From Piromyces finnis finn (Eukaryota > Fungi > Neocallimastigomycota), in assembly GCA_002104945.1 (NCBI GenBank), contig MCFH01000005.1:1-64000 (forward strand): a DNA stretch of 64,000 nt, read 5' to 3'. Both the position numbers and the translations under genes were made by a program. Positions 1,339-48,219 of this stretch are shown here, piece after piece. Below the pieces are notes generated by a model that saw only the letters and a list, made by a program, of their open reading frames with translations, made no database searches and was not told where the DNA came from. Each line of letters starts with the position of its first letter. The stretch's first letter is position 1.

Positions 1339-2777
1339 AACATAAAACTTAATAACAGATTCATAAAGAAATATTTATATATATATATTTCAGAGTGGAA
1401 TATGGTTTTATTAAAATGTATTGAACAATGTGTATTCTCAAAGAATATTAATAAGTATTAATTTTATCATCTTTGGCACTAAATTACACCTTAAAAGATT
1501 GATTACTACAAAAAATAATAAACATAAATATAAATATTTTTTAAAAAAAATTGTAATACAATAATCAATACATTTAAATTCGAATAATAGATTTTAATGT
1601 ACATTTTAATTGTGGTTAATAAAAATTATTAATGATCATATTTATTAATTAAAGATTCTTGAATTTTATTATTTAATATAATTCTAATTAATATATTATA
1701 GCTATTTTTAATTTTCCTTATTTTAAAAAAAAAATAAAATAAAAACAATAACAAATATTATAAATTGATATTTAATAAAATTTATATAACAATTTTGATA
1801 ATAATGAAAATAAAATTAATCATGATTATTATTATTCTTAATAATTTGAATCTTATTTATCGCATTATATTTAATTTATATAATAATACACTAATAAATA
1901 TAATAATAAAATATTCATAAACAAATTACAACGGTAAATATTTCGAAATTTTAAATATTAAAAAATTTGAATTAGCATCTTAAAAATCAACAATAATAAA
2001 CAATAGACGGAAATTAATTATTTTAAAATAAAAAAGAATACAATAATTATAATAATAAATATTATATTGATAGATACATTAAATTTATTAAATACAAATT
2101 GTAATACCATAATCTCTTACTTCTTTCGCTAAAAAAAATTAAAAATAAATAAATTCTAAGAATTTAAAAAAGTATATAAACAAAAAATATTATTCAAAAA
2201 ATTCGTATTTAAAATTGTACAACAATAAATATATCATATTATCTTATTACTTTATTTATAATTGTACAACATTAAGAATTGATATTATTAATATCAAAAA
2301 TCTCATATGTTTAATATTCATCTAAAAAATTAATATAAATAAATTATTTATTTTTTTTTAATATATAATAATAACAATTAGCCAATAAATATTCAACTAT
2401 TTAATTATATTAAAAATATATATATTATTAATATTAATATAACCCAAACTTTAATTGTTATCCTATTAATATTTTTAAATAATGAATTTAATTACTACAA
2501 TAACTTGAACTTTAATTACTATATTTTATTTATTACTCTACCTTTACAAAAAGTATATATAATACATGTTAATTTCTCAGTTTTCGTTTTATAAAAAAAA
2601 AAAAAAAAAAAAAAATAATAAATAAATAAAAATATAAATAATAATTTTAAAAATGGATATTTGCTAAATATATATTGTAATATAATAGATTGATAAAATT
2701 ATATATATTTTTATTTATTAATATAAAAAAATAAATTCGTACTAATAAAGATAAGAATAATATAAAATATATTCAAA

Positions 2778-4323
2778 ATGGTGAATAATTATTACGGATA
2801 TACTGAAAAAGATTTTATAGGAAATAATACTAATCCATCTTTTAAAGATTGGATGAGTAGTAAAGGAGTCAGTTATGAATGTTATGTTGATTGTATGGGC
2901 CAATTAAGTGAAATTGAATATTATAATAGAGTAATTCAAAAATTTAGAGTAATAGTAACAGCAATTCAAGCACCACTTAATTTTCTATTTTTTTATTGGA
3001 CATTACTTGTTTTTATGTTACATAAATTTAACTTTAAAAAACCAGTAATGAAACTTCTTCTAGGACATTTTGTATTAAGGTAAACTTTTTTTATTTAATA
3101 TATATTAGAATAATAATAAAATATAAAAATAAAAAATTGTTTATGAATATATAAATATTAAGAAATAAAAAAAATAAAGAATAATATCAATTATCTTTGC
3201 AAAGATGAAAAAACTAATTAAAAAAACAACATACATTTATAATATATTTTTGATTAGATGTTTAGGAAATATATTTGACGAATTAGGTGGTTTATTTCCT
3301 ACATATTATAGTTATCAACCAGATGGAGGTAATAATTATAGATGCGAATGTGGCTCTAACACATTAAATCCTCTAAGATGGATTTTATCAAGATATATTG
3401 GAACATTTTGTTGGTATATGGGAGAAATTATTGGAGATTGGTATCCATTACTTCGTACTAAAGCTGTAGTAAAAAATAAATCAATATGGATAGTATATAT
3501 AACCTGTGCTATATTTAATATGACAAAGATTATTTTAATTGTCTTCCATTGGTCTATGGATCCAACAAAATTATATGATTTACAAACTGGTAGATTTAAA
3601 AAGAAGATTATAAATGACTTCTATACAAATTATTGGATTTTACAATTAGTAATTATTTACGCAACAGTATTATATGAACTTTCAGTATACTTTGTTTTAA
3701 AGAAAAATATATTTAAAGTAACAAAATATGATAACGGATTTTTTAAAAAATTTAAATCTCTATCAGAATATAGAATTTTGGTTTCAGCAGTAGTTGCATT
3801 CATCTTTTTACCTATTGCATCTATTGCTTTATTTTTAAAAATATACTTTATTAAAGTAAAAAATAAAAATTTAGAGTTTGAATTTGAAACTCTAAGACAA
3901 TCTATAGCTAATCTTCAATACTATATGATATTTATTGATCAAATATTATTAATCACCTCAAATTATGAATCAATATTAGCCAATTTCAACATATTTAATT
4001 GTTTTAACAGTAATACTGGTTCATCAAATAATATAAATTCCTCACCGCGTGTTGAAGTACAATATCTTTCAACAACAACTCAAAAAAGTGAAATAGGCTT
4101 TAATAATAATTTTCGTGAATATACCTTTGAAAAAAAAAACAACTCACAAATAAGCACAATGGATAAAGATACAAGCTTTATAGCAAATACAAGTGTGACT
4201 GCTATTAATAGTGATATTAATCAATTCACTTATCAAACAGATAATAATTTAAATATTAACATACGACCAAAGAATTCACTGAGTAGCGATAAATATCTAC
4301 CTACTATTGATGATGACAGATAA
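2778..4323 (+). CDS. Orphan multi-pass (~7 TM) membrane protein, 2 exons (2778-3079, 3258-4323)
   Basis: GT-AG intron 3080-3257 joins ...GHFVL-R|CLGNIFD in frame. About seven hydrophobic segments are followed by an Asn/Ser/Thr-rich tail. No family motif was recognised. Confidence 0.75.
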
Positions 4324-4394
4324 TAATTTAAATATTAACATACGACCAAAGAATTCACTGAGTAGCGATAAATATCTACCTACTATTGATGATG
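4237..4394 (+). repeat. Perfect 79 bp tandem duplication spanning the stop codon of the 7TM gene
   Basis: acagataataatttaaatattaacatacgaccaaag...ctactattgatgatg occurs at 4237-4315 and 4316-4394. Confidence 0.92.
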
Positions 4395-6155
4395 AAGATA
4401 TTTAATATAGTATTTCAATAATATATAATAGAAATATATTATAATATCTAATAAATATTATGTAATAATAAGATATTAAATGATAATATCTAAATATAAC
4501 ATATTTCAATAATTATAATGTAATTAATACTATTTAGTAGTTTCTTTATTCTTTTTAGAAATACAATTATGTATAAACAATTTTCATTTGTAAATAAAAT
4601 GAAAACCATCTATCTATATTCATTTAAAAAATATATTGTATGATAATAATTTAATATACTTTAATATAAATATAAATTAATATTAAAAAAAGAAAATCAT
4701 TTTATATACAAACTGCTTAAAAAATGTATATAACTTTAACTAAAAATAGAACAAATAAGAGATAAATTAAAATAAAAATACTATTAAACTTTCATATGTT
4801 TATATTAATTTTTATATTTAAATTTAAATTTATATAATTTTAATTATTGCATATTTCTAAAATTATACATATTTTTATTTTTAGTTAGAAATATAAAAAT
4901 TAAGATTTTTTTTGACAAAATTATTATTATAAAATAACGGAAGATAAATTATGATTGAAAATGTATAAACCTTAATTATTATTAAATTAAATAGATTATA
5001 TTTTAATTATTTATTATGTTTTGTGATGAATAGAAAAAGTAACTATTTAAAGTTTTTCTTTCCATTGTTTATAAATTATTATTTTATTCATTGTCTCCCT
5101 ATAAACTATGATGTATTGTAACTTAATTTTAATGATCCGAATTTTTATAATAAAAATTGGATAAATGTTAACCCTTTTTTTTTATTATTTTATGAATCAT
5201 AATTAATATTAAAAGATTTTCTTATTTTTAATATACTGCTAATAGATAATATTAATAATAATTTATAATTAATATTTCAAAATTTCATATCAATAATACA
5301 AAAAAAAAAAAGATTGACATAATATTTTTAACTATAAATTATAATAAATATAATATAATAATTCTACCATATTTTTTTGCAAAAAAAAAAAAGATGGTAT
5401 ATATTAAAGCATTAATGCAATTGTTTTATTATAAATATTATTCTATGATATAACATTTTTATTTTTTTTTTTTTTTATTTCAAATTACTAGGTTTAGCTT
5501 TGTAAACTTTTTTTTTTTTTTTGAAGAAATTGACTCTTTTAATTACAATAGTCATCTTTTTTTAATATTATATATATATTTATCTTCTTCCTTATCTTCT
5601 TGCCTTGTATAAAATAGTATATTAGTTATCTTTTACAATTTTTAGCATTTACATTGTCACATTTATTTAATTTTGGGTAAAATGGAGGAAAAGTAAAATA
5701 ACTTTATATTTTTAAAAAATATATTTTTGTATTGGTGTTAATATTATTAAGAAGTAATAAGTTATTAATCTACAAAGCTTATTTTTAAAAATTATAAAAA
5801 CTTAAAATTCAAAATTTTATAATATTAAAAAAAAAAACTTTTATTTAATTATTAATCCTTTTTCAAAAAATAAAAAATAAATATGAAGATTTATATATTA
5901 ATAATCATTTAAAAATATATAACGAAAAGTTTTTTGTTTTTGTTGTTTGTTTATATATTAGTATAAATGAATTTTCAAAAAGGTTAATTAATTGGTGTAA
6001 TGGGGAAAAAATTATGTATTTAATAACTTAGGCACTAAACAATAAATAATTATATAAAAAACTATTAATAAAAAGAAAGAAAAATTAAAATACATAAAAG
6101 GATATTATTATTTTACACTAATATTTTTATCTTGACTTAATATTTAAAAATAAAA

Positions 6156-11611
<5,456 letters not shown>

Positions 11612-12112
11612 ATTATGCATTATCAACTATTTTCAATAATTTATATTATTCATACCCTATAAATGTTATAATATTGGCATGAGCACAGGTTGAGAATAAT
11701 TTTAACTATTTAATTTGAAGTACCTAATTTCCCACTGTATTTTTAAATAACAATTGAGTTTTTCTTTATAAATGCATAGTATTTCTTTATTTTTCAACAA
11801 TTCATTGGTATAATTGGTATAATCTATCTTTTTTTTTTTTCTATTAAACTAATAAAAACACCAATAATTATACAATAAATATTTTTATAAATTATATTTT
11901 CTAATAAAGATTATGAAATCAATTAAATTTTTATCGGGTATAAAGTTATTCTTTTAATTACTAATATAAAAAAAATAATTGACATTGATATAGAAAAAAA
12001 AAAAAAACTATGTACAAAATAATTAATATATAAAATTAAATAGATTACAATAATTTTTTGTTGTTAAATTTTTAACCATCTTTAGAGTATTATTTTTCAA
12101 TGATAAGAATGA

Positions 12113-12603
12113 TTAAAACATACTGTTGTGGTATGAACCAGTGGTAATAAGATCTGGTCTTTTATTAAATAATATTTTTCTTCTAATAATTGTTGTAAGT
12201 TGATAATCTTTTCCCTTATCATTATCATCTGTATCCATCATATCTTCTTCATTTAAAGTTGATTCTTTCCTTATTATAGCAAGAGGTTTTTCTAATTCAA
12301 CTAATGTACCATACAATTTATGATTCCCAATAACAATAGACATTTCTTTCTTTATAATGTTATGATTTTAAAATGATAATACATTGTTTGATTATTAAAT
12401 ATTTATACATATTATATCATAACAAAATTATATAAATTTACCTCATTAAATTCTGTTATATTTCCTAATTCTTTTCCTTGAATATTTAATTCTGAATTAA
12501 ATTGTAATGAACCCTGGAATTCTAATAATATGTAATCTTCAAATTTACTTAAAGGTTTATGCTGAGGTAATAATTGTTCTGTTTTAATTACTAATTGAAC
12601 CAT
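12113..12603 (-). CDS. CTF8: Chromosome transmission fidelity protein 8 (CTF18-RFC subunit), 2 exons
   Basis: MVQLVI...YILLEFQGSL...GKELGNI / MSIVIGNHKLYGTLVELEKPLAII...IIRRKILFNKRP. GT-AG intron 12350-12441 preserves frame. Confidence 0.85.
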
Positions 12604-12732
12604 TTTCAAAGTATCTGGTATTAAATTTTTTTTTTTTTCTTATAAATATAAACTTTTATAAAGTTTTTTATATTAATAAAAATTGTAACATTTTAATAAT
12701 AAAATATTTCTTGAATAATAAAAACTTAACAC

Positions 12733-14980: not shown

Positions 14981-17095
14981 ATGATAAATAAAAAAGAAAA
15001 AATTATAAATGACCCTGTTCATGGGATAATTAACCTAGAAGAATTTGCAATTGATATTATTAATACTAGATATTTTCAACGTTTACATCATGTACGTCAA
15101 TTAGATATTGCTTATTTAGTATACCCTGGTGCTATGCATACTCGTTTTGAACATTGTATTGGAACTTATTATATTACAAGAAAATTATTAGAAAGTCTTA
15201 ATTTAGAGAATACAAAATATGCTAATATTATAAAGGTTTCAGCTTTAATCCATGATATTGGTCATGGACCATTTTCACATCAGTACGATAGTTGTAGAGT
15301 TGATAAATTTCAACACGAAGAAAGAGCAAGTGTAATTATAAAAAAAATGTCAGAAGAAATTACTAATCCAGAGACAAAAAAATACTTTACCCCAGAAAAT
15401 ATAAAACTTATTTGTCGTATTATTAATGGTAATGATACTATTATTCAAGATGGTCATAAGACCCCTGATTGTGTATCAGTGAATTGTGATGATTCGGATG
15501 AAGAAAATGATAATAATGAACTAAATCATAATAATAATAGCATTGATGATGACGTACCAAATTATGTTTTTGAAATTGTTAGTAATCACTATAATGGTAT
15601 TGATGTTGATCGTTTTGATTATATCATAAGAGATAGCTATTATACTGGCGTTTGCACTTCATTTAATTTACAAAGAATTCTGCAAGTTGCTGAATTAAGA
15701 AATGGTCATATGGTTTTCCCTAAAAAAGATTTTTATACTATCTTTTTATTTTTTCAAGCTCGTTATATTTTACATAAATTAGTATACCAAGTAAGTTTTT
15801 TTTTTTTTTTTTTTTTGTTTTAAAGATATTCATAAATTTATCATTAGTATTAATTATGATATACTTTTTTTTTTTTTAAATATTATGTAAAAATATTATT
15901 TAACAATTTTAACATTGTAGCATAAAACAGTAATATGTTATGGAAAAGTTTTAAGACAAATCATAAAAAGACATATTAATCAAATTAGAGCATTGTAATT
16001 AAATATATATATTTATAATATTTTAATTCATGGAGTATTTATAATTAAATCCTTATTATAAATTAATATTAAATGCTATTATTTTTATTATTTTTATTTT
16101 ATTATTCTAAAGGGAATGGGAAGATCAAACGGATGAAAATCTACTCTATTTAATGAGGTAAAAGTCAAATGCTAAATAAAATATAATTAAATATATTTAA
16201 AATATATTTATATATCATTGAATGTATTATTAAAATTGAATATTATTATTTTATTTGTGTATAATTAAAATATATATATATATATATGTATATTATCATT
16301 ACTACTACTAATAATAATACTAATAATACTAATAATAAATAGAGCAACTGATGCTAAGTTTAAAAAAATAAAAAAATACTATCCTACTTATGAAGAATTT
16401 AAAAAAAATGATATTAAGGATATCATAAAAAAATCAAATTTATATTTGACTCCTGAACAAATTAAAGACCTAACCTATATATCAGAATCTCAGTATAATG
16501 AAATTGGAGAAGTTGGAGCAGATAATATCCTTTATCGTGTACCAGTTTATAAGATTGCTAAAAAAATTGTATTGAAACGATTAGATGTGAATGGCTATCA
16601 TCATCTAGTGAACACTGATAAATTTTATAAAATACAAAATGGAAAACCAAAACTATTGGATGAAGAAGAAGTATGCTTAATTCATAATAATAATACTATA
16701 TTAATGGAGGCGATAAATGATGGTTTATATGTTTTTACAGAACCAATGGATTCTTCATACGAAATAAAAGATGTAGGTTTAAAGAATATAAAAACAAAAG
16801 CAAAAAAAAAAAAAACTTTTAATTATTATAAATAATGTTTCTTTTAAAAGTATAAAATTTTTATACTAAATTTTAATAACCCCTCTTTTTTTTTTTTTCC
16901 TTAATTTATTAGGAGGTATCCTTTGGATTTGGTGTTCCTTCACAGTCATTCTATAAAAATATTCTATTTTTTGATAAGGATGAACCTGATGAATGTAATG
17001 TTAAATCATTTGAAGAATTACATGAATCAGCATGTCTACCGCAAGAATGGTTTGAGTACTCTATTAATTATTATAGCAAGATAAATAAAGTCTAA
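14981..17095 (+). CDS. SAMHD1-like HD-domain dNTP triphosphohydrolase (no SAM domain), 5 exons
   Basis: DPVHG, FQRL..VRQL, YPGAMHTRFEHCIG, LIHDIGHGPFSH, HEERA and GIDVDRFDYIIRDS motifs. Downstream exons (about 15922-15995, 16111-16157, 16343-16771, 16913-17095) join in frame and end CLPQEWFEYSINYYSK. Confidence 0.85.
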
Positions 17096-17924
17096 AATAA
17101 TACCATTATTAATAAATAAATCATCAATATAAAAATTTGAGAAAAAAAAAAAATCATATAATTTACTTTTTTTAAAGTAATGAATTATAAACAGTATTTA
17201 TAATTGTGTCAATACTAACCAACTAATATCTTTCTAATTTTCTAATATTATTAATCATTATAATATTATCCTTTTTCCTTTCTTTTTACTTTATTTTCAT
17301 TCCATTATTTAATTATTTTTATAGAAGGCATTCAAAAAACTTGTTATAGAACTAATAATAATAATAATAATAATAACAATAATAATTATAGTAATAATAA
17401 ATAAATAAATAAAATAATATTTTACATTTAAATAATATTAAATATAAACTTTTTTTTCAAATACATTGACAATACTTTTAATTAACCTTGGTATTATGAA
17501 TGCTTTTAAAATTTGTTTATTATTATAATTGTTATATTTAATATTATCATAATAAATAGTAGAATGAATAAAAAAATTTCTTTATTAATAGTTAGATTGA
17601 TCAATAAACTCTGGCATTTTTATTTTATTTATTTATTATTATTATTATTTTTTTTTTGTAATAACTATCAAAATAATAACTGTATATTATGAATTAAAAA
17701 GAAAAAAAAAAAATTTTTTTTTTTGAGGTATTTTAAAAAAATTAAAAGATTATAGTTAATTATACCAATAATAATTAATAATAAATACAATTACTCTATT
17801 GATTTTTTTTTTTTTTTATACAAAAAATAATACTAATATTAATAATAATATTATAATTTTAATTTTAATTTACTTTTATTTATCTTTACTTTTTTTTTTT
17901 TTAATTGTTTTATATCTGTTATTA

Positions 17925-18085
17925 TTCTTATTATTCTTATTATTCTTATTATTATTTTAAATTGAATTGAATCATGAATCAAATCAAATTGAAATATTAT
18001 TATTTTTATTATTTTTATTATTTTTATTATTTTTATTATTTTTATTACTATTTTTATTTTTATTTTTTATTTTATTTTATTTTTT
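17925..18085. repeat. Compound 9-bp/5-bp simple repeats ((ATTATTCTT)n, (TTTTTATTA)n) between converging gene ends
   Basis: Directly visible short tandem units. Confidence 0.7.
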
Positions 18086-18312
18086 TTTTGCATTAATTTT
18101 TTTTATTTAATTATGATGTTACAGATGATTACTTGTTGATATTAAAAAAGATAAGATATATAAAATTATAAATACATAAATAATAATAATATATAAATGA
18201 TTTATTATCATTATTATCATGTATTGATATGAAAATATAATTTATACAAATAGTCTATTGAATTATTAAAAAATTAAATTATGAAAAGTTATTAAAATGT
18301 ATATTTTTTTTT

Positions 18313-21899
<3,587 letters not shown>

Positions 21900-23056: not shown

Positions 23057-26000
23057 TTAGTGCAGTTGATCCAAAATATATTGGTGAAGGGAGATAGTAT
23101 TGTATAATGTAGTAAAGAGTGATTCTATTTCTACTTTATAATTAATAAATAACATTTTTTCTATGGCTTTTCTTTTATAACAATATTAAATATTAAACTT
23201 AGTATATAATATATTGTTTACTTCTAATATAATAAGTACTTACTTTACTTGATGATTATTAAAACATTTATTAATTAGGGTAAAACATTTTTTCCTATCA
23301 TTATTAGTTAATGGGATCATCTGGGAATTTAATATTTTATAGCTAATATAAGTAATTGGAAATTAGTAAATAATAATACTATTAAAAAAAAAAAGGATAA
23401 ATTATAAAGTTACTTTTGAATATCATTATAATTAATACCAAGTGGTATTATTTCTGGAATTGATAAATGATCTTTATAATATTCAAGGGACTATAATAAA
23501 ATAAAATTTTATCATAATTATTAAAATTTAAAAAACTAAAAATATGTATTTTAATCTTATATATACTTTTGAGCCATTTTGATATATTAAAAATATTTCT
23601 TGGCCATAAGGATCAAAATCCATTAATCCATATATTTTAATATTTTTACTAAAAAAAAAATTATATCATTATAAAAAAAAAAAGTATTTTTAATTTTATA
23701 TATTTAAAAATAATATGTATTTCTTGTTTGTTTATTTGTATATTTACCTATTTTTTTGAGAGTCATTTAATTTTTTATTAAAGTATTTATTAATAGAGTC
23801 TTTATTTTTTTTATCTTTTGTTATATATTTTATTAGATATTTAATATGTATTAGTTTTTATTTATTTATTTATTTATATATTATTTTTTTTGTAAAAAAA
23901 ATTTTTGTATTACAATTTAATTTATTAATTAGATATCTCAAAAATAATCTTGTACATAAATCAGGATAGCCTTTTCCCTTAATTATTATTGAAACACAAT
24001 ATAAATAATCAAATATCATACATCTATTTAAGATGAAACTTTAATTTAAATCAATACCGTTACTAGGATAATATTTTTATATTTTTCTAGAAAATTTGAA
24101 TTATACAAGTATTGAAAAATGGCATCTTTTTCAATTACTATAATGGTATTTCCAAAAAATTCTATATGTTTTTTTTTAAAAAAATTTTATAGGTTAAGTA
24201 TTATTTTATATAATAATATAATATAAAATTCTCATAACAAAATGCAATATATATGTATGTAAAGGATATCTTCAATTTCATCTATATATGGGATTTGATT
24301 TACCTATTTAATTAAAAGAAATATATTAGAAATAATTAAAAAAATATAATAATTATAGTTAACAATTCTTTTCTACTTTTTTTTGGCAATTTATTAAAAT
24401 CCCTTTTTTTGTTTTAATAATAATATTCCCTGTTATTAACCCTTTTTGAGAAGCTATCTTTATTATATATAGATAATTTATTAATTATTGATAATTTAAA
24501 TTACATAATATTTATATCAGTATTACAATATTTAATGATGAATGTGGAACTCCAAGAGAGCAACTTATGTCATTAATAATCTGTTTTTGTATAAATTATT
24601 AATATATATATTTTAAATATTAAAAGAAATATATATTCATTAATATATTTAATATTTATTTCATTTCATTTTATATTATATATATATATATTTTTTTTTA
24701 CATTATTAACAGTTATTTGACTTTTATATAGAGTAACATTTCTATAATAAATATCTCTAAAATTGAAATAATATAATATACTATTAATTATTTTTATTAT
24801 AATAATATATTATTTACAATATATTTATATTATATTACCTTTTTGTAACAATAATATTATTTTTTAAAAAGCTTTGAAGTAATTGAAGGATAGAAACAAA
24901 AATTTCTAGATAAAATATAGTTTATACAATTAATATTATATATATTTAATGAAAAATCCTATTACATAATAAAAAAAAACATTCTGATGATAATTCTTAT
25001 ATTTTATACCAAAACTTTTAGATTTTTTTCTATTTAAATTAACATATTTAAATTTTAATTGCATTGAATTTGAATTATTTATTGGATTAATAGAAAAATT
25101 TGATTTTCCTCTTGAAATAAGTTTCAATCGTATCTTTTTATTAGGAATTGTTTGCATGCTTATTAATTCAAATTTTATAATTTCTAATAATTGATCGATG
25201 ATATTTAGTGTCCAAGAACTTTTAAAATTGTAATATAATTATAATAATCAAATGAATATATTATGCTTTTAATAGATATTATTATGTTATACAGTTATTA
25301 TATTACCTATCACGCAATAAAAAATCATAGGATGAATAATCTCTGAAAGAAATAGTAGAAATATTTTTGTATTTTTCTACAAGATTACTATACTCTTCCA
25401 TTATTAATTTTTTTTTTGTAGTACGTTTATTATTTTAAATATAAATAAATATATTTTCATCAAACATAAAAAAGAAAATATCTTTTATTATTTTACAAAA
25501 ATAAAAGTAATAAATAAAAAATAAAACAAATTTTGTACTTTTTTTTATTGAGCTATGAATTATACTACTTTCACTTATACTTTCCCATTCCTTTTTATCT
25601 ATTTTTTTGGAGACATAAATAAGAAATATTTTTTTTAAATAATTTTAATTATTATTAATAATTACCTGTTTTTTTATTGTCTAGTTTTAATGAATAACTA
25701 ATTTTATCCATATTGTAAATTGTTTTTATTCTATTATTCTTGTTTTCAAAAACTTGATTTGACATGTTAATACATACATTGTTAGTAATTCTGGTATTTT
25801 CCTTTTTTGAATTGAAACTTTTTATATTACTTTCATTATACATATATTCAAAATTATCTTGTTTTTCATTATTATTGGGCAATATTAAATTAATATTATC
25901 TATTATATTTTCATTAATAATATTTTGTGAATCTTTATTTATGTCATGGAAAAAAACATGAGATGAAGTATTACAATTTGTTTTAATTTTTTTTCTTTTA

Positions 26001-26883
26001 GTATTTTCATTAGAAAAATTATTGTCCCTATTTTTAAAATCTTTTTTGGTTGTATAATTATTATTGATTAAATTATTATTATATTCAATATTTGTAAAAA
26101 CCAAATTATTATTCATACTACTATTTAAATTTTTGATTTTTTTTCCATTACTATTTGAAATACAATTTCCTAAATTTAATACTTTATTCATGTATATATT
26201 TTCTGAGTAGTATTTATTATCGTTATTACGATTTGAATTAGTTAAAGATGTTATTGCTACGTAATTTTCCTCATTGTTAATAAGTCTATCAATATTTTTA
26301 TTTATATATTTATCATTAATATTAGTATTATTATTTAAAGTTTTTTCTTTTTCCTCGTTATTACTATAACATTCATATGTAATTCGTTTAATAGCATTAT
26401 GTAAACTTTGATTAATATTGATATCTTTTTTTTTTGTTTCCTTCATATTATTATTAATTTGGTCATTGAAATTTATATTAGCAATATTTATAGTGTTCAT
26501 ATTATTTTCATTTATTTTTAAATCATTTATATTGATTAATTTATTAATATTATATGATTTTTCATCATTATTATCATTACTATTAATTATGTTTATGTTC
26601 AAGTTTTCAATTTCTCTTTTAAATGAGTTATATATAAATAAATTTTCATTTTTTTCCTCTTGGTTTTTAAAATCTATTAAATATACAAAGGGTTAAAAAA
26701 TTAATTTAAAATTCTTGTTATTATTGTGTTACAATATAAAGAATTATCAAAAACATTTTTCTAATTTATTAGAATCTTCTAATAAATTTGAATATAAACA
26801 CTTTTTATTAATATATATTATAAATAATTACTTTTATTATTACTTATATTCATAGCATATTCAAACAAGTCATCATTGTTCAT
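23057..26883 (-). CDS. SPO11: Meiotic topoisomerase-like protein SPO11 (Top6A family), ~17 exons; the 5' Asn-rich exons are a less certain part of the model
   Basis: Manual exon chaining gives TKRDIYY (catalytic Tyr, exon 24702-24756), KSQITVNN|IINDISCSLGVPHSSLNI, ASQKGLITG, IIVIEKDAIFQYL, LVT|GKGYPDLCTR (exon 23914-23977), YGLMDFDPYG (exon 23567-23648), PLTNNDRKK, MLFINYKVEIESL and stop at 23057. Confidence 0.88.
24168..24269 (-). other. U12-type (minor spliceosome) AT-AC intron in SPO11
   Basis: Minus strand reads GAA G|ATATCCTTTACA...AATACTTAACC...AAAAAC|AT ATA GAA TTT. The 5' site matches the U12 consensus ATATCCTTT, a branch-like TACTTAAC lies at 24200-24193, and the 3' end is AC. Removal restores the frame into the EKD Toprim motif; retention gives a TGA stop. 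Confidence 0.85.
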
Positions 26884-30466: not shown

Positions 30467-31048
30467 ATGCAAGCTATAAAATGTGTTGTTGTTGGTGATG
30501 GTGCCGTCGGTAAGACTTGTCTTCTTATCTCATACACTACCAATGCTTTCCCAGGTGAATATGTCCCAACCGTTTTTGATAACTACTCAGCCAATGTTAT
30601 GGTTGATGGTAAGCCAATCAATTTAGGTTTATGGGATACTGCTGGTCAAGAAGATTACGATCGTCTCAGACCACTTTCATACCCACAAACTGATATTTTC
30701 CTTATCTGCTTCTCACTTGTTGCCCCACCATCATTAGAAAACGTTAAGACCAAGTGGTGCCCAGAAATTTCTCATCACGCTCCAGGTACTCCAATTATTC
30801 TTGTTGGTACCAAGCTTGATTTACGTGAAGATAGAGATACCATTGAAAAGTTAACTCAAAAGAGAATGGCTCCAATTAGTTACCAACAAGGTTTACAAGT
30901 TTCTAAGGAAATTAACGCTGTTAAATACTTAGAATGTTCTGCTCTTACTCAAACCGGTTTAAAGAACGTTTTTGATGGTGCTATTCGTGCTGTTCTTTGC
31001 CCACCATCTCCAAAGAAGAACAAGACTAAGAAGTGTCTTATTTTATAA
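30467..31048 (+). CDS. RAC1: Rac-type Rho GTPase, intronless CDS
   Basis: [57 protein letters not shown], polybasic tail and CaaX (CLIL). Confidence 0.95.
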
Positions 31049-37264: not shown

Positions 37265-38379
37265 TTTTATATTATTTTATTATTATTATTATTGTTTTTA
37301 ATTTTTATTAATAAAGGTTTTAATAATATTATTATTTTTAAAATAAAGTGAAATTTTTATACTTGTTTTATATTTATTTAATAGTATTTTAAATTTCTAA
37401 TAATTAAATAAAAAATATTTAAATTAAAATTAATGTTGAAAAATATTACTTTTTTTTTAGATTAATTAAATTAAATGTATATTTTAACAATATTATGATG
37501 TTTTAATAAATAAATGATAAATTGCCTTTATTATTTTTTTTAGAAAAAGACGAATGATAATTATATATAATTTTTATTAATAACGATTAATGTTTGTTGT
37601 TAAAATTATTGTTTGATTGTAAAAGAATCCCAACTATAAAATTAAAATTAAAATTAAAATTAATATGAAAAAAAAATTTTAAAATAATTAATTTTTTTTT
37701 ATTTCATTTTTTTCAATATACACAAAGAAAGAATAAAAAATGTATGATATATTTAAAATTCAATACATTATACATTAAAAATGGAATATGATTGGTAAGT
37801 ATAATTCATTAATTCTTAATTTATTTTCATAATCTAACGTTTGGTTGAAATTTATAAAATAACATTAAAGAAAGGAATAGAGAATATATACTATACTAAA
37901 TCTAAATGGTGATACTATAAGATTATTACTTTAAAACCTTTTAAATTACAAAGAATAATAAAAATATGATAAAGAAAAAAAATTTTGAATATATAGTAAA
38001 TATAAATAATATAAATATTTTATTTTATTTTAATATTACAATACAATATTATTATATATAAGTAATTCGACAATTTTACTAAAGTTATAAACATTCCTAT
38101 AGAATAAAATTAACAATAAAGGATATTGAAGTTGCATTATATATTTGTATATATATTTTAAGAAAAATCCAATTAAACTATATGTACCATTTTACCATTT
38201 TTATGATTTTAAATGATACATCTTCTTTTTCTTTTTTTTTTTAGTTTTCTATTAATTAATAGAAAAATTCATAATGAGATATATCATTATTGTAATATTT
38301 TAATATTAATTTTAAATTTATTTTTATTAAATATTGCTTTAAAAAATGTTTTGTTTTTATTTTAAAATATAAAAATAAC

Positions 38380-45761: not shown

Positions 45762-48219
45762 TTTTAATTATTTGTAAATTCTATATTTTTCAGATAATTA
45801 ATATAAACAATAACAAAATTTATTCACAAATAAAGATAGGTATATATACAATGTGTTATTATTTTTTAATTTTATTATTATAAATTCCAAATAATAATAA
45901 AATAATAAAAAGTTTAAAAATTCAAATATTTTTTCACCTTTATAAATGTCTCAAAATCTAAAACTATTTATTAATCCTTTTTTTTTTTTATTATTATATA
46001 TATTTAATTAAACTAATTTATTAGCTAATATATTATAATAATCTAAGAATTAAATGAAAAAAAAAACATTTTTAAAATGTTATAATAATATATGTTAAAT
46101 GTTATTTAATAATTTTCGTTTTATTTTTGAAATTATTAAAATGATATTATTGGTTTATTTGTTGCCGTAAATTAACTTTTATATTTAATATTACCAAAAA
46201 AGCACAAAAAACTCAAACATTATTTTGTCATACAATGTATACATAATATATGTTTTATAATGATTTTATTATGAATAAAGTTATGTAATATTAGCCAATA
46301 AAGTTTCATTTTCTAAATTAAAAAAAATAATTATTTTAAATTTATTTTTAATCTTTTATTTTTTTCGGAAATTCATTCTACATTTAAACGAACTATTTTT
46401 GTATTATTTCTACTATTTAAACTATAATTATTCTTATTTTTATGGAATATACCATTTAGAATACAAATAAGTAAAACGAAAATAGTATGAAAATCTCTAT
46501 TTATTTAATAAATAATATAAAGTTAAATTTTCAATAATTCAATACAAATGATTAAACTTATAATAATATAATGAATCCTAAGAACATAAATTATCTATTA
46601 TCCTTTTAATGAGAAAATATAACAATAATAAAGTATTAGATAAACTATACAATTAAATTCAATGTTTTAATATAATTATATATATTAGAATATAGCGAAT
46701 ATTTTAAACAATAATAAACCTTTTCTACTATATGTATCAATAGAAACGTAACATTTTTATCATACTTTTCACAAATCTAGAGAATTTATAATTTTATATT
46801 TTAATTGAAAAATTTTAAATTATGCAAAAAAAAAAGATAATAAAATAACATGTAAATATGTATTTCAATGATTTAAAAATATCATTAGTTCAACACAATA
46901 TGCGAATATAAGAATAATAATAATAATTATTATTATATATCTTATGAATTGAATTTAATTACATAATTATTAACAATAATTTATCTAAAATTTAATTATG
47001 TATAAATTTGAATTGAAAGCTAAAAAGTTGATGTAAATAGTATTAATATGCCAAGATGATTTTTATTTTATTTAAAGTATACAAATTATTATTATTTATT
47101 CATATTGATAATGAAAAGTATTCCAAAAAAAAAAAAAAGTTCTTATTCTTCTTTTTTAAATTTTTATTAATTTTTTAAAATTTAACTAGTTTTGTTACAC
47201 AAATTAAATCTAGAAAAAAAAAAAAGGATATTATACAATTTATTTAGATTCATAAAGCATTATATTATATTGATATTATAAGAAGATCCTATATTTTCTA
47301 ATTACTATAACCTACCTATATATGTTTATTTATAACTCATAAATATTCTTATTCTTATATTTTCATTATTTATTTGAGCAAAAATTAATTTAATTCAATT
47401 CAAAAAAAAAGTCTAAAGGTATTTATAATTAAAACACATGATATAAAAATATGATTCACATGATCTAATAGTAGGGTTAGAATATATTAGAATTTATTTA
47501 CTAATAATAATATAATTATACATTTTTATATCATTCTATATTTATTATTCATTATAAACTTTATTTATTAATATTATTTTTTTGTGATTGATAATGAGAA
47601 AAATGATGAAAAAGAAATTATTGGCTAATTTTTATGTAATTTAAAAAATAGTTTTTATCATCAAAAAATTTAAATAAATAAATTTTTTAAAATTTAAAAG
47701 TGTAGTAAATAATAAATAAATAAATAAATAAATAAATAAAAACAACATATATGATATATATAATAAATATATAATTAAATCATTATTGTTATTATTATAT
47801 TTTCTTTTTCTTTTTTATTTTATAAGTTGAAATTTAAAAGAAATAATAATAATAGTAATAGTATAAATTAAATAATATTTAGAAAAATAATAAATTATAT
47901 TAGATTTGTCAAAATATTCAACATTTTTTCATTTGGATAATTTAATTGTAAGATCTTTAATATACAAAAATAATAAAACGTTTTAAATTTTTATTATAAA
48001 TTTATTTAATTACCAAAATATTATTTATATTAAAATTAAAAATATCATTTATATTAGTATTAACAAGGTGTTTTCTTTCTTTCTTTTTTTTTTCTTTTTT
48101 ACTAATTAATTAATTAATAATTATTATCACAATTTTTTTTTTAAATTCAACATAATTAATTGTTTATTATTTTCATATTCATCATACTAAAAAGGCATAT
48201 ACATAATAAGCGAAATAAG

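Follow-up and report, generated by a model that had tools for sequence, protein, structure and literature searches.

Whether an anaerobic gut fungus can keep an intact and working gene for SPO11, the enzyme that initiates meiotic recombination through programmed double-strand breaks, in a phylum without an observed sexual stage is the question raised by a locus of Piromyces finnis. The 64,000 nucleotides (nt) analysed here (contig MCFH01000005.1, positions 1 to 64,000; 'the window') contain, on the minus strand, a gene that runs from an ATG at 25401-25399 to a TAA at 23059-23057, which is exactly the span (23057-25401) where an earlier reading of the bare sequence (the original prediction) had located a hidden SPO11. 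Its premise that sex is unrecorded in the Neocallimastigomycota is confirmed by statements in Amses et al. (2022, PMC9457484) and Wilken et al. (2019, PMC6883316), according to which no sexual stage has been observed in this phylum. Judged by its domains and motifs, the P. finnis gene is a SPO11 orthologue, a eukaryotic relative of the A subunit of archaeal topoisomerase VI (Topo VI), and the structure, selection and genomic company of this gene are considered in turn below.

Structure and family of the SPO11 gene

The exon model was hand-built from the three-frame translation and then verified for each exon by phase arithmetic. It comprises 14 exons of 34-209 nt (Table 1) that sum to 1209 nt, or 402 codons with no stop, and on removal of the 13 introns the phase is kept at every junction; 12 of the 13 introns are of the GT-AG type and measure 69-121 nt. 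The claim that tiny exons join in frame without stops is upheld by this model, conditional on AT-AC splicing of intron 7 and on the inclusion of exon 10, and the four motifs reported along with it are all located, namely RDIYY (with its Arg codon split between exons 3 and 4), EKD (as VIEKD in exon 8), GKGYPD (exon 9) and DFDPYG (exon 11). An in-frame stop is found 11 codons 5′ of the ATG. The exons have a guanine plus cytosine (GC) content of 21% as compared with 11% for the introns, in a window that is extremely AT-rich (∼10-28% GC) and a genome (56.46 Mb in 232 contigs) of ∼17% GC.

Exon 10 is required for the frame and permits two frame-keeping GT-AG solutions only, with acceptors at 23814 or 23799. 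Between exons 9 and 11 of the orthologous gene in Anaeromyces robustus there is a single frame-keeping GT-AG mini exon, of 31 nt, and its peptide NINKYNNILNN is similar to SINKYFNKKLN in exon 10 of P. finnis. As this is the sole mini exon available to A. robustus at this place, the similarity argues that exon 10 is real.

Table 1. Exons of the P. finnis SPO11 gene, intron 7 and flanking genes (window positions; identities are for amino acids).
Feature	Position	Strand	Length (nt)	Content and identity
Exon 1	25307..25401	-	95	ends in phase 2; 52% to A. robustus, 71% to Piromyces sp. E2
Exon 2	25010..25218	-	209	N-terminal region; 54% to A. robustus over 68 residues, E 3e-20
Exon 3	24839..24905	-	67	final two bases open the Arg codon of RDIYY
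Exon 4	24702..24756	-	55	(R)DIYYRNVTLYKSQ; catalytic tyrosine, 5Y-CAP/winged-helix domain
Exon 5	24527..24580	-	54	end of TP6A_N domain; 83% to A. robustus
Exon 6	24377..24457	-	81	IASQKGLITGN...; 78% to A. robustus, 89% to sp. E2
Exon 7	24270..24303	-	34	VNQIPYIDEIE and first base of a split Asp codon; boundary identical in A. robustus
Intron 7	24168..24269	-		candidate U12-type AT-AC intron; 5′ ATATCCTTT, 3′ AC
Exon 8	24058..24167	-	110	start of Toprim; VIEKD glutamate
Exon 9	23914..23977	-	64	GKGYPDLCTRLFLRYL, holds GKGYPD; 86% to A. robustus
Exon 10	23748..23814	-	67	low-complexity mini exon, 52 nt if acceptor 23799; insertion relative to Pfam profile
Exon 11	23567..23648	-	82	IYGLMDFDPYGQEI; DxD metal-binding motif of Toprim (DFDPYG)
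Exon 12	23414..23490	-	77	62% to A. robustus
Exon 13	23244..23342	-	99	63% to A. robustus, 74% to sp. E2
Exon 14	23057..23171	-	115	includes TAA stop; ...IEKMLFINYKVEIESL...; 71% to A. robustus, 77% to sp. E2
Alg9-like mannosyltransferase	19047-21899	-		PF03901; A. robustus counterpart at 12045-12626 (+) of its locus
Rac1	30467-31045			5 kb from SPO11

Family searches were carried out with single exons or their open frames rather than with the joined protein. The Pfam profile TP6A_N (PF04406) matches exon 4 with 26.9 bits (curated cut-off 26) over profile positions 24-49, RDIYY included, and exon 5 with 16.8 bits over positions 44-62, while TOP6A-Spo11_Toprim (PF21180) matches exon 8 (26.4 bits, positions 2-29), exon 9 (16.7 bits, 30-49) and exon 11 (24.1 bits, 50-76). 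These matches are colinear along the gene and bear out, exon by exon, the family named in the original prediction. Toprim positions 2-76 are contiguous across exons 8, 9 and 11, and since the profile passes directly from position 49 in exon 9 to position 50 in exon 11, exon 10 constitutes an insertion relative to the family. The second tyrosine of RDIYY we take to be the catalytic one, by analogy with yeast Y135 and mouse Y138. Exon 8 aligns with the VVEKDAVFQ block of Saccharolobus shibatae Top6A (PDB 2zbk, chain 2zbk_A), and the A. robustus counterpart of DFDPYG aligns with DADPYG of the same chain. In a six-frame search of the whole P. finnis genome with TP6A_N and PF21180 the SPO11 locus is the only one matched, and the A. 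robustus orthologue used as a query likewise returns this locus only.

The UniRef name of that orthologue, 'DNA topoisomerase (ATP-hydrolysing)', raises the alternative that the gene encodes the A subunit of a true Topo VI, as plant SPO11-3 does; paired with a B subunit, it would serve decatenation or endoreduplication and be unrelated to recombination. The search of solved structures points in the same direction, as the A. robustus protein finds archaeal Top6A (2zbk) only and neither yeast nor mouse Spo11, and the exon 4 open reading frame finds no match among solved structures; yet the archaeal top match says little, yeast and mouse Spo11 being too divergent for phmmer with short queries. 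The transducer domain of the B subunit (PF09239) is not matched anywhere in the P. finnis genome, even at E≤1, in a six-frame search whose exon-wise sensitivity is limited, whereas the same search is positive in four archaeal controls. Because no such domain is detected, a SPO11 role is favoured over a Topo VI role; the latter is disfavoured by the apparent lack of the B subunit, and we consider it extremely improbable. To our knowledge, fungi are not known to possess Topo VI.

The predicted protein resembles the SPO11/Rec12 proteins of fungi and animals in its ∼400 residues, in the order of a 5Y-CAP domain with an RDIYY-type tyrosine followed by a Toprim domain with E and DxD, in being encoded at the only genome locus with both domains and in its co-occurrence with DMC1, HOP2 and MND1. 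It differs from them in that it comes from a phylum without an observed sexual cycle, in its division among 14 exons, all very small, within so GC-poor a genome, and in an extra mini exon of low complexity that falls between positions 49 and 50 of the Toprim profile. With archaeal Top6A, its best solved-structure match, it shares alignable VVEKDAVFQ, GxPD and DxDPYG blocks; in contrast to that system, a B-subunit transducer domain is not detectable in P. finnis, and the locus is eukaryotic, intron-rich and syntenic.

An intron of the minor-spliceosome type

The SPO11 frame is kept only when intron 7 (24269-24168), which interrupts the coding sequence just 5′ of the exon with the Toprim catalytic glutamate, is spliced as AT-AC. 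GT-AG splicing of this intron was rejected, and AT-AC splicing assigned, because no GT donor keeps the frame. The 5′ end, ATATCCTTT, is a consensus U12-type 5′ site, and the 3′ end reads ...AAAC; in A. robustus the intron reads ATATCCTTT...ATAC and lies at the same split Asp codon and in the same phase. The U12 branch motif TCCTTAAC, expected ∼10-20 nt from the 3′ splice site, has partial matches in both species (ACTTAAC at 25 nt in P. finnis, TTTTAAC at 12 nt in A. robustus), the former being both imperfect and distant from the 3′ end. A full-length gene for U12 small nuclear RNA (snRNA; RF00007) is present at C189:428380-428555(-) with 66.6 bits, above the gathering score of 53, and Larue and Roy (2023, PMC10639083) have already described minor introns and snRNAs from P. 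finnis.

As exact copies of ATATCCTTT occur six times in the window, against 2.5 expected from shuffles, the weight of the AT-AC call does not lie on this motif alone; it lies on the only frame-compatible boundary together with the same boundaries in the orthologue and the U12 snRNA gene. On these grounds intron 7 is assigned as an AT-AC intron of the minor-spliceosome type, the removal of which would be needed for the frame to continue. With the U12-type introns described from Neocallimastigomycetes (PMC10639083) it has in common the ATATCCTT 5′ site, the terminal AC, a TTAAC motif that resembles a branch site and a genome that encodes a U12 snRNA, and it differs from them in lying inside SPO11 and in being mishandled in the public A. 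robustus model. The five other ATATCCTTT copies, at 6097-6105(-), 7375-7383(-), 16525-16533(+), 38118-38126(-) and 47223-47231(-), may be further 5′ splice sites of the U12 type.

The conservation of this intron invites the speculation that it acts as a gate, such that SPO11 mRNA would be translatable only at high minor-spliceosome activity, for example in a resting or sporangial stage. If that were true, the output of the break-making enzyme, and hence cryptic meiosis, would be switched by minor-intron retention; we regard the idea as very doubtful.

Orthologues and selection

Direct single-exon queries are too short to recover orthologues, which were located instead via synteny with Rac1, a gene with orthologues in A. 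robustus, Piromyces sp. E2 and Neocallimastix. In A. robustus, a gene with both Spo11 Pfam domains adjoins Rac1 (MCFG01000183.1), and in P. finnis as in A. robustus an Alg9-like mannosyltransferase (PF03901) is found 3′ of SPO11 on the same strand, with Rac1 on the 5′ side; the microsynteny Alg9-like mannosyltransferase - SPO11 - ... - Rac1 is conserved between the genera. Every P. finnis exon except exon 10 has a colinear tblastn match in A. robustus with 52-86% identity. None of the 13 introns, the AT-AC intron included, differs there in position or phase, and the orthologue has no stops.

Selection was estimated, over two to three genera, as the ratio of nonsynonymous to synonymous divergence (dN/dS) by the Nei-Gojobori method with Jukes-Cantor correction, sites and differences being counted per exon and then summed, with split codons and exon 10 excluded. 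Between P. finnis and A. robustus (366 codons, 65% amino-acid identity), dN is 0.23, dS is 1.11 and dN/dS is 0.21 (bootstrap 0.14-0.29), values that are to be taken as approximate given a dS of ∼1.1 near saturation and an extreme AT bias; between P. finnis and Piromyces sp. E2 (250 codons, 74% amino-acid identity), dN is 0.17, dS is 0.92 and dN/dS is 0.19. Identity between P. finnis and A. robustus SPO11 at codon positions 1, 2 and 3 is 75%, 85% and 59%, respectively. In 2000 runs of a neutral simulation, in which the divergence of third positions was imposed on all positions, ∼29 stops arise (minimum 13) and amino-acid identity falls to 28%, as compared with the 0 stops and 65% observed. The orthologous introns, on the other hand, differ widely in length, and they align no better than shuffled sequences do (z -2.8 to 2.5). 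A dN/dS of ∼0.2, with 13 intron positions and phases kept while the intron sequences themselves can no longer be aligned, indicates that SPO11 has been under purifying selection since the Piromyces-Anaeromyces split and that it is functional rather than a relic. The purifying selection put forward in the original prediction is thereby supported, and none of the outcomes named there as speaking against it has arisen, as the model has neither stops nor frameshifts, dN/dS is not near 1, and the host is without known sex.

These figures also bear on the possibility that sex was lost recently and that SPO11 persists, unexpressed or unneeded, for want of time to decay. Such a relic would fit the lack of a transcript in the collections scanned and the failure of public predictors to give a correct A. 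robustus model, and the very low GC content has been interpreted, in a passage of PMC6883316, as a sign of very rare outcrossing. It is difficult to reconcile with the lack of stops in both genera over so long a synonymous divergence, or with the low dN/dS and the conservation of 13 of 13 splice-site pairs and phases next to randomised introns, and the loss would need to have occurred separately, and only very recently, in the two lineages. The selection test largely excludes the relic reading, which we hold to be very improbable.

The description of the gene as hidden stands in part. The public A. robustus model BCR32DRAFT_281586 (880 residues, locus 4001-9163), which is the only public SPO11 model whose splicing was compared, is wrongly spliced: it is fused to an unrelated N-rich upstream open reading frame of 570 residues, jumps from '...DCQEK' to 'EAIFQYL' and so omits exon 7, the AT-AC intron and the start of exon 8 with the catalytic IIVIEK, has exon 9 cut after 'LCTR' and is devoid of exons 13-14. 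On the other side, machine-annotated orthologues with Spo11 domains do exist in A. robustus and in one Neocallimastix assembly (GCA_050613775.1), where an annotated gene of 1046 residues with both domains lies beside Rac1 and runs off the fetched locus. In N. californiae and N. lanati no called gene is found in the fetched 10 kb 5′ of Rac1, a stretch possibly equivalent to the GCA_050613775.1 region.

In Piromyces sp. E2 (KZ151076.1), exons 1-6 are found at 17255-18348(-), 7 kb to the right of Rac1, and exons 13-14 at 1758-2068(-), 8 kb to its left, with exons 7-12 missing. Runs of N at 2340-6480 and 17182-17201 lie between the two parts, and the split around Rac1 is probably a scaffolding error, a real rearrangement being possible.

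Directly 5′ of SPO11 in the window lies an open reading frame with 100% identity to the NCBI P. finnis protein BCR36DRAFT_459397 (25655-26602, minus strand, 356 residues), in agreement with P. finnis as the host; it ends 254 bp before the SPO11 ATG. It has no Pfam domain and no homologue was detected outside P. finnis, and the N-terminal extension of the A. robustus SPO11 model shows no relation to it.

Meiotic partners and the probable use of SPO11

Among the meiotic partners that the original prediction had listed, DMC1, HOP2 and MND1 are present in the P. finnis genome, while no Topo VIB transducer was found. In comparisons with the human DMC1 and RAD51 structures, DMC1 (C158:227144-228139(+), multi-exon) scores 70.7 bits with the former and 38 with the latter, and RAD51 (C156:1476943-1478327(-), multi-exon) has the reverse score pattern; a third, weaker Rad51-family locus is seen at C2:1120758-1121624. 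HOP2 is matched at C68:351476-351607 with 49.7 bits and MND1 at C164:230367-230450 with 36.7 bits. The match to REC114 is weak (22.1 bits, below the 23.8 cut-off), as is the single HORMA match in the genome. Two kleisin N-terminal domains are encoded, and the second, divergent one at C162:117105-117188(-) is possibly REC8; at least three MutS loci are present, and a divergent multi-exon MutS_V locus at C90:111403-111995(-) is possibly MSH4 or MSH5.

We think it fairly probable that P. finnis has a functional SPO11 whose programmed breaks belong to a meiotic or meiosis-like stage that is rare, or has yet to be observed, in the life cycle of anaerobic fungi. A SPO11 dimer would attack both DNA strands via its tyrosines, with Mg2+ held by the Toprim residues, to yield programmed double-strand breaks as in other eukaryotes, and DMC1 and RAD51 would then repair these breaks with HOP2-MND1. 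Cryptic meiosis in P. finnis is, in our view, plausible though unproven, and the case for it is strengthened by the presence of DMC1, HOP2 and MND1.

Several observations weigh against this reading, besides the approximate nature of dN/dS and the poor branch-site match of intron 7 already mentioned. Exon 10 is of low complexity and its acceptor is ambiguous. Exon 1 has an in-frame ATG in P. finnis alone; because none is found in A. robustus (locus positions 6020-6200) or at 18348-18590 in sp. E2, where a homopolymer of 15 A residues lies immediately 5′ of exon 1, an upstream exon may carry the true start in these two fungi. The placement in the SPO11 over the Top6A subfamily is provisional. 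A scan of metagenome contigs with exon 2 gives no relatives, and neither transcripts nor environmental copies turned up; a degenerate DNA pattern for MDFDPYGQEI finds no match in metagenomes or metatranscriptomes. A search of 1.84 billion protein representatives with exon 8 (36 residues) returns no real relative, although so short a query is weak, needs more than ∼35 bits and misses orthologues of ∼60% identity; its sole match was rejected as a tandem-repeat artefact with thioredoxin/zinc-ribbon noise. Finally, a sexual stage has yet to be seen, and the genomes of anaerobic fungi are estimated to be haploid (PMC9457484).

With no meiosis or zygote described and genomes that appear haploid, a functional SPO11 could instead be used outside classical meiosis, in a parasexual cycle or for programmed breaks in mitotic or sporangial nuclei, and purifying selection proves that there is a function, not which one. 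A precedent is offered by Candida albicans, in which recombination is reported to take place during the ploidy reduction that follows nuclear fusion (the parasexual cycle). However, DMC1, HOP2 and MND1, which are specialised for meiotic strand invasion between homologues, are kept as well, and retention of the whole module is most simply explained by meiosis; a purely non-meiotic use is accordingly unlikely in our estimation, if worth keeping in mind. With regard to the alternative of cryptic meiosis or a mitotic break role advanced in the original prediction, the intactness of the gene and the selection on it are supported, while the role itself is what we infer from them, and the idea is less new than that prediction suggested.

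Wilken et al. (2019, PMC6883316) argued for a possible capacity for sex in anaerobic fungi from DMC1 among other genes; the main text of that paper names DMC1, STE20, STE6 and GPA1, with SPO11 unmentioned there, and our literature search found no paper that combines SPO11 with Neocallimastigomycota. The logic is that of toolkit studies on putatively asexual fungi, both Glomus among the arbuscular mycorrhizal fungi (PMC3184777) and the anaerobic fungi (PMC6883316), in which conserved meiosis-specific genes together with unseen sex are read as cryptic sex. In the present case it is the enzyme that makes the breaks that is documented, with a corrected structure and a selection test. What is new is the corrected SPO11 structure and the errors in public models, the general idea of cryptic sex having been published; the finding adds to published hints of hidden sex and is not categorically new.

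The tiny exons and the minor-type intron explain why SPO11 is mis-modelled by automatic annotation, and because it is, surveys of the 'meiotic toolkit' that rely on the predicted proteomes of these fungi can yield truncated proteins as well as false negatives. Anaerobic gut fungi, powerful degraders of plant biomass, are organisms for which neither genetics nor breeding is available. A maintained SPO11 together with DMC1, HOP2 and MND1 would imply that the apparatus by which meiotic breaks are initiated and repaired has not fallen out of use, so that it is reasonable to look for a sexual or parasexual stage that can be induced, and SPO11, DMC1, HOP2 and MND1 may be used as markers of such a stage.

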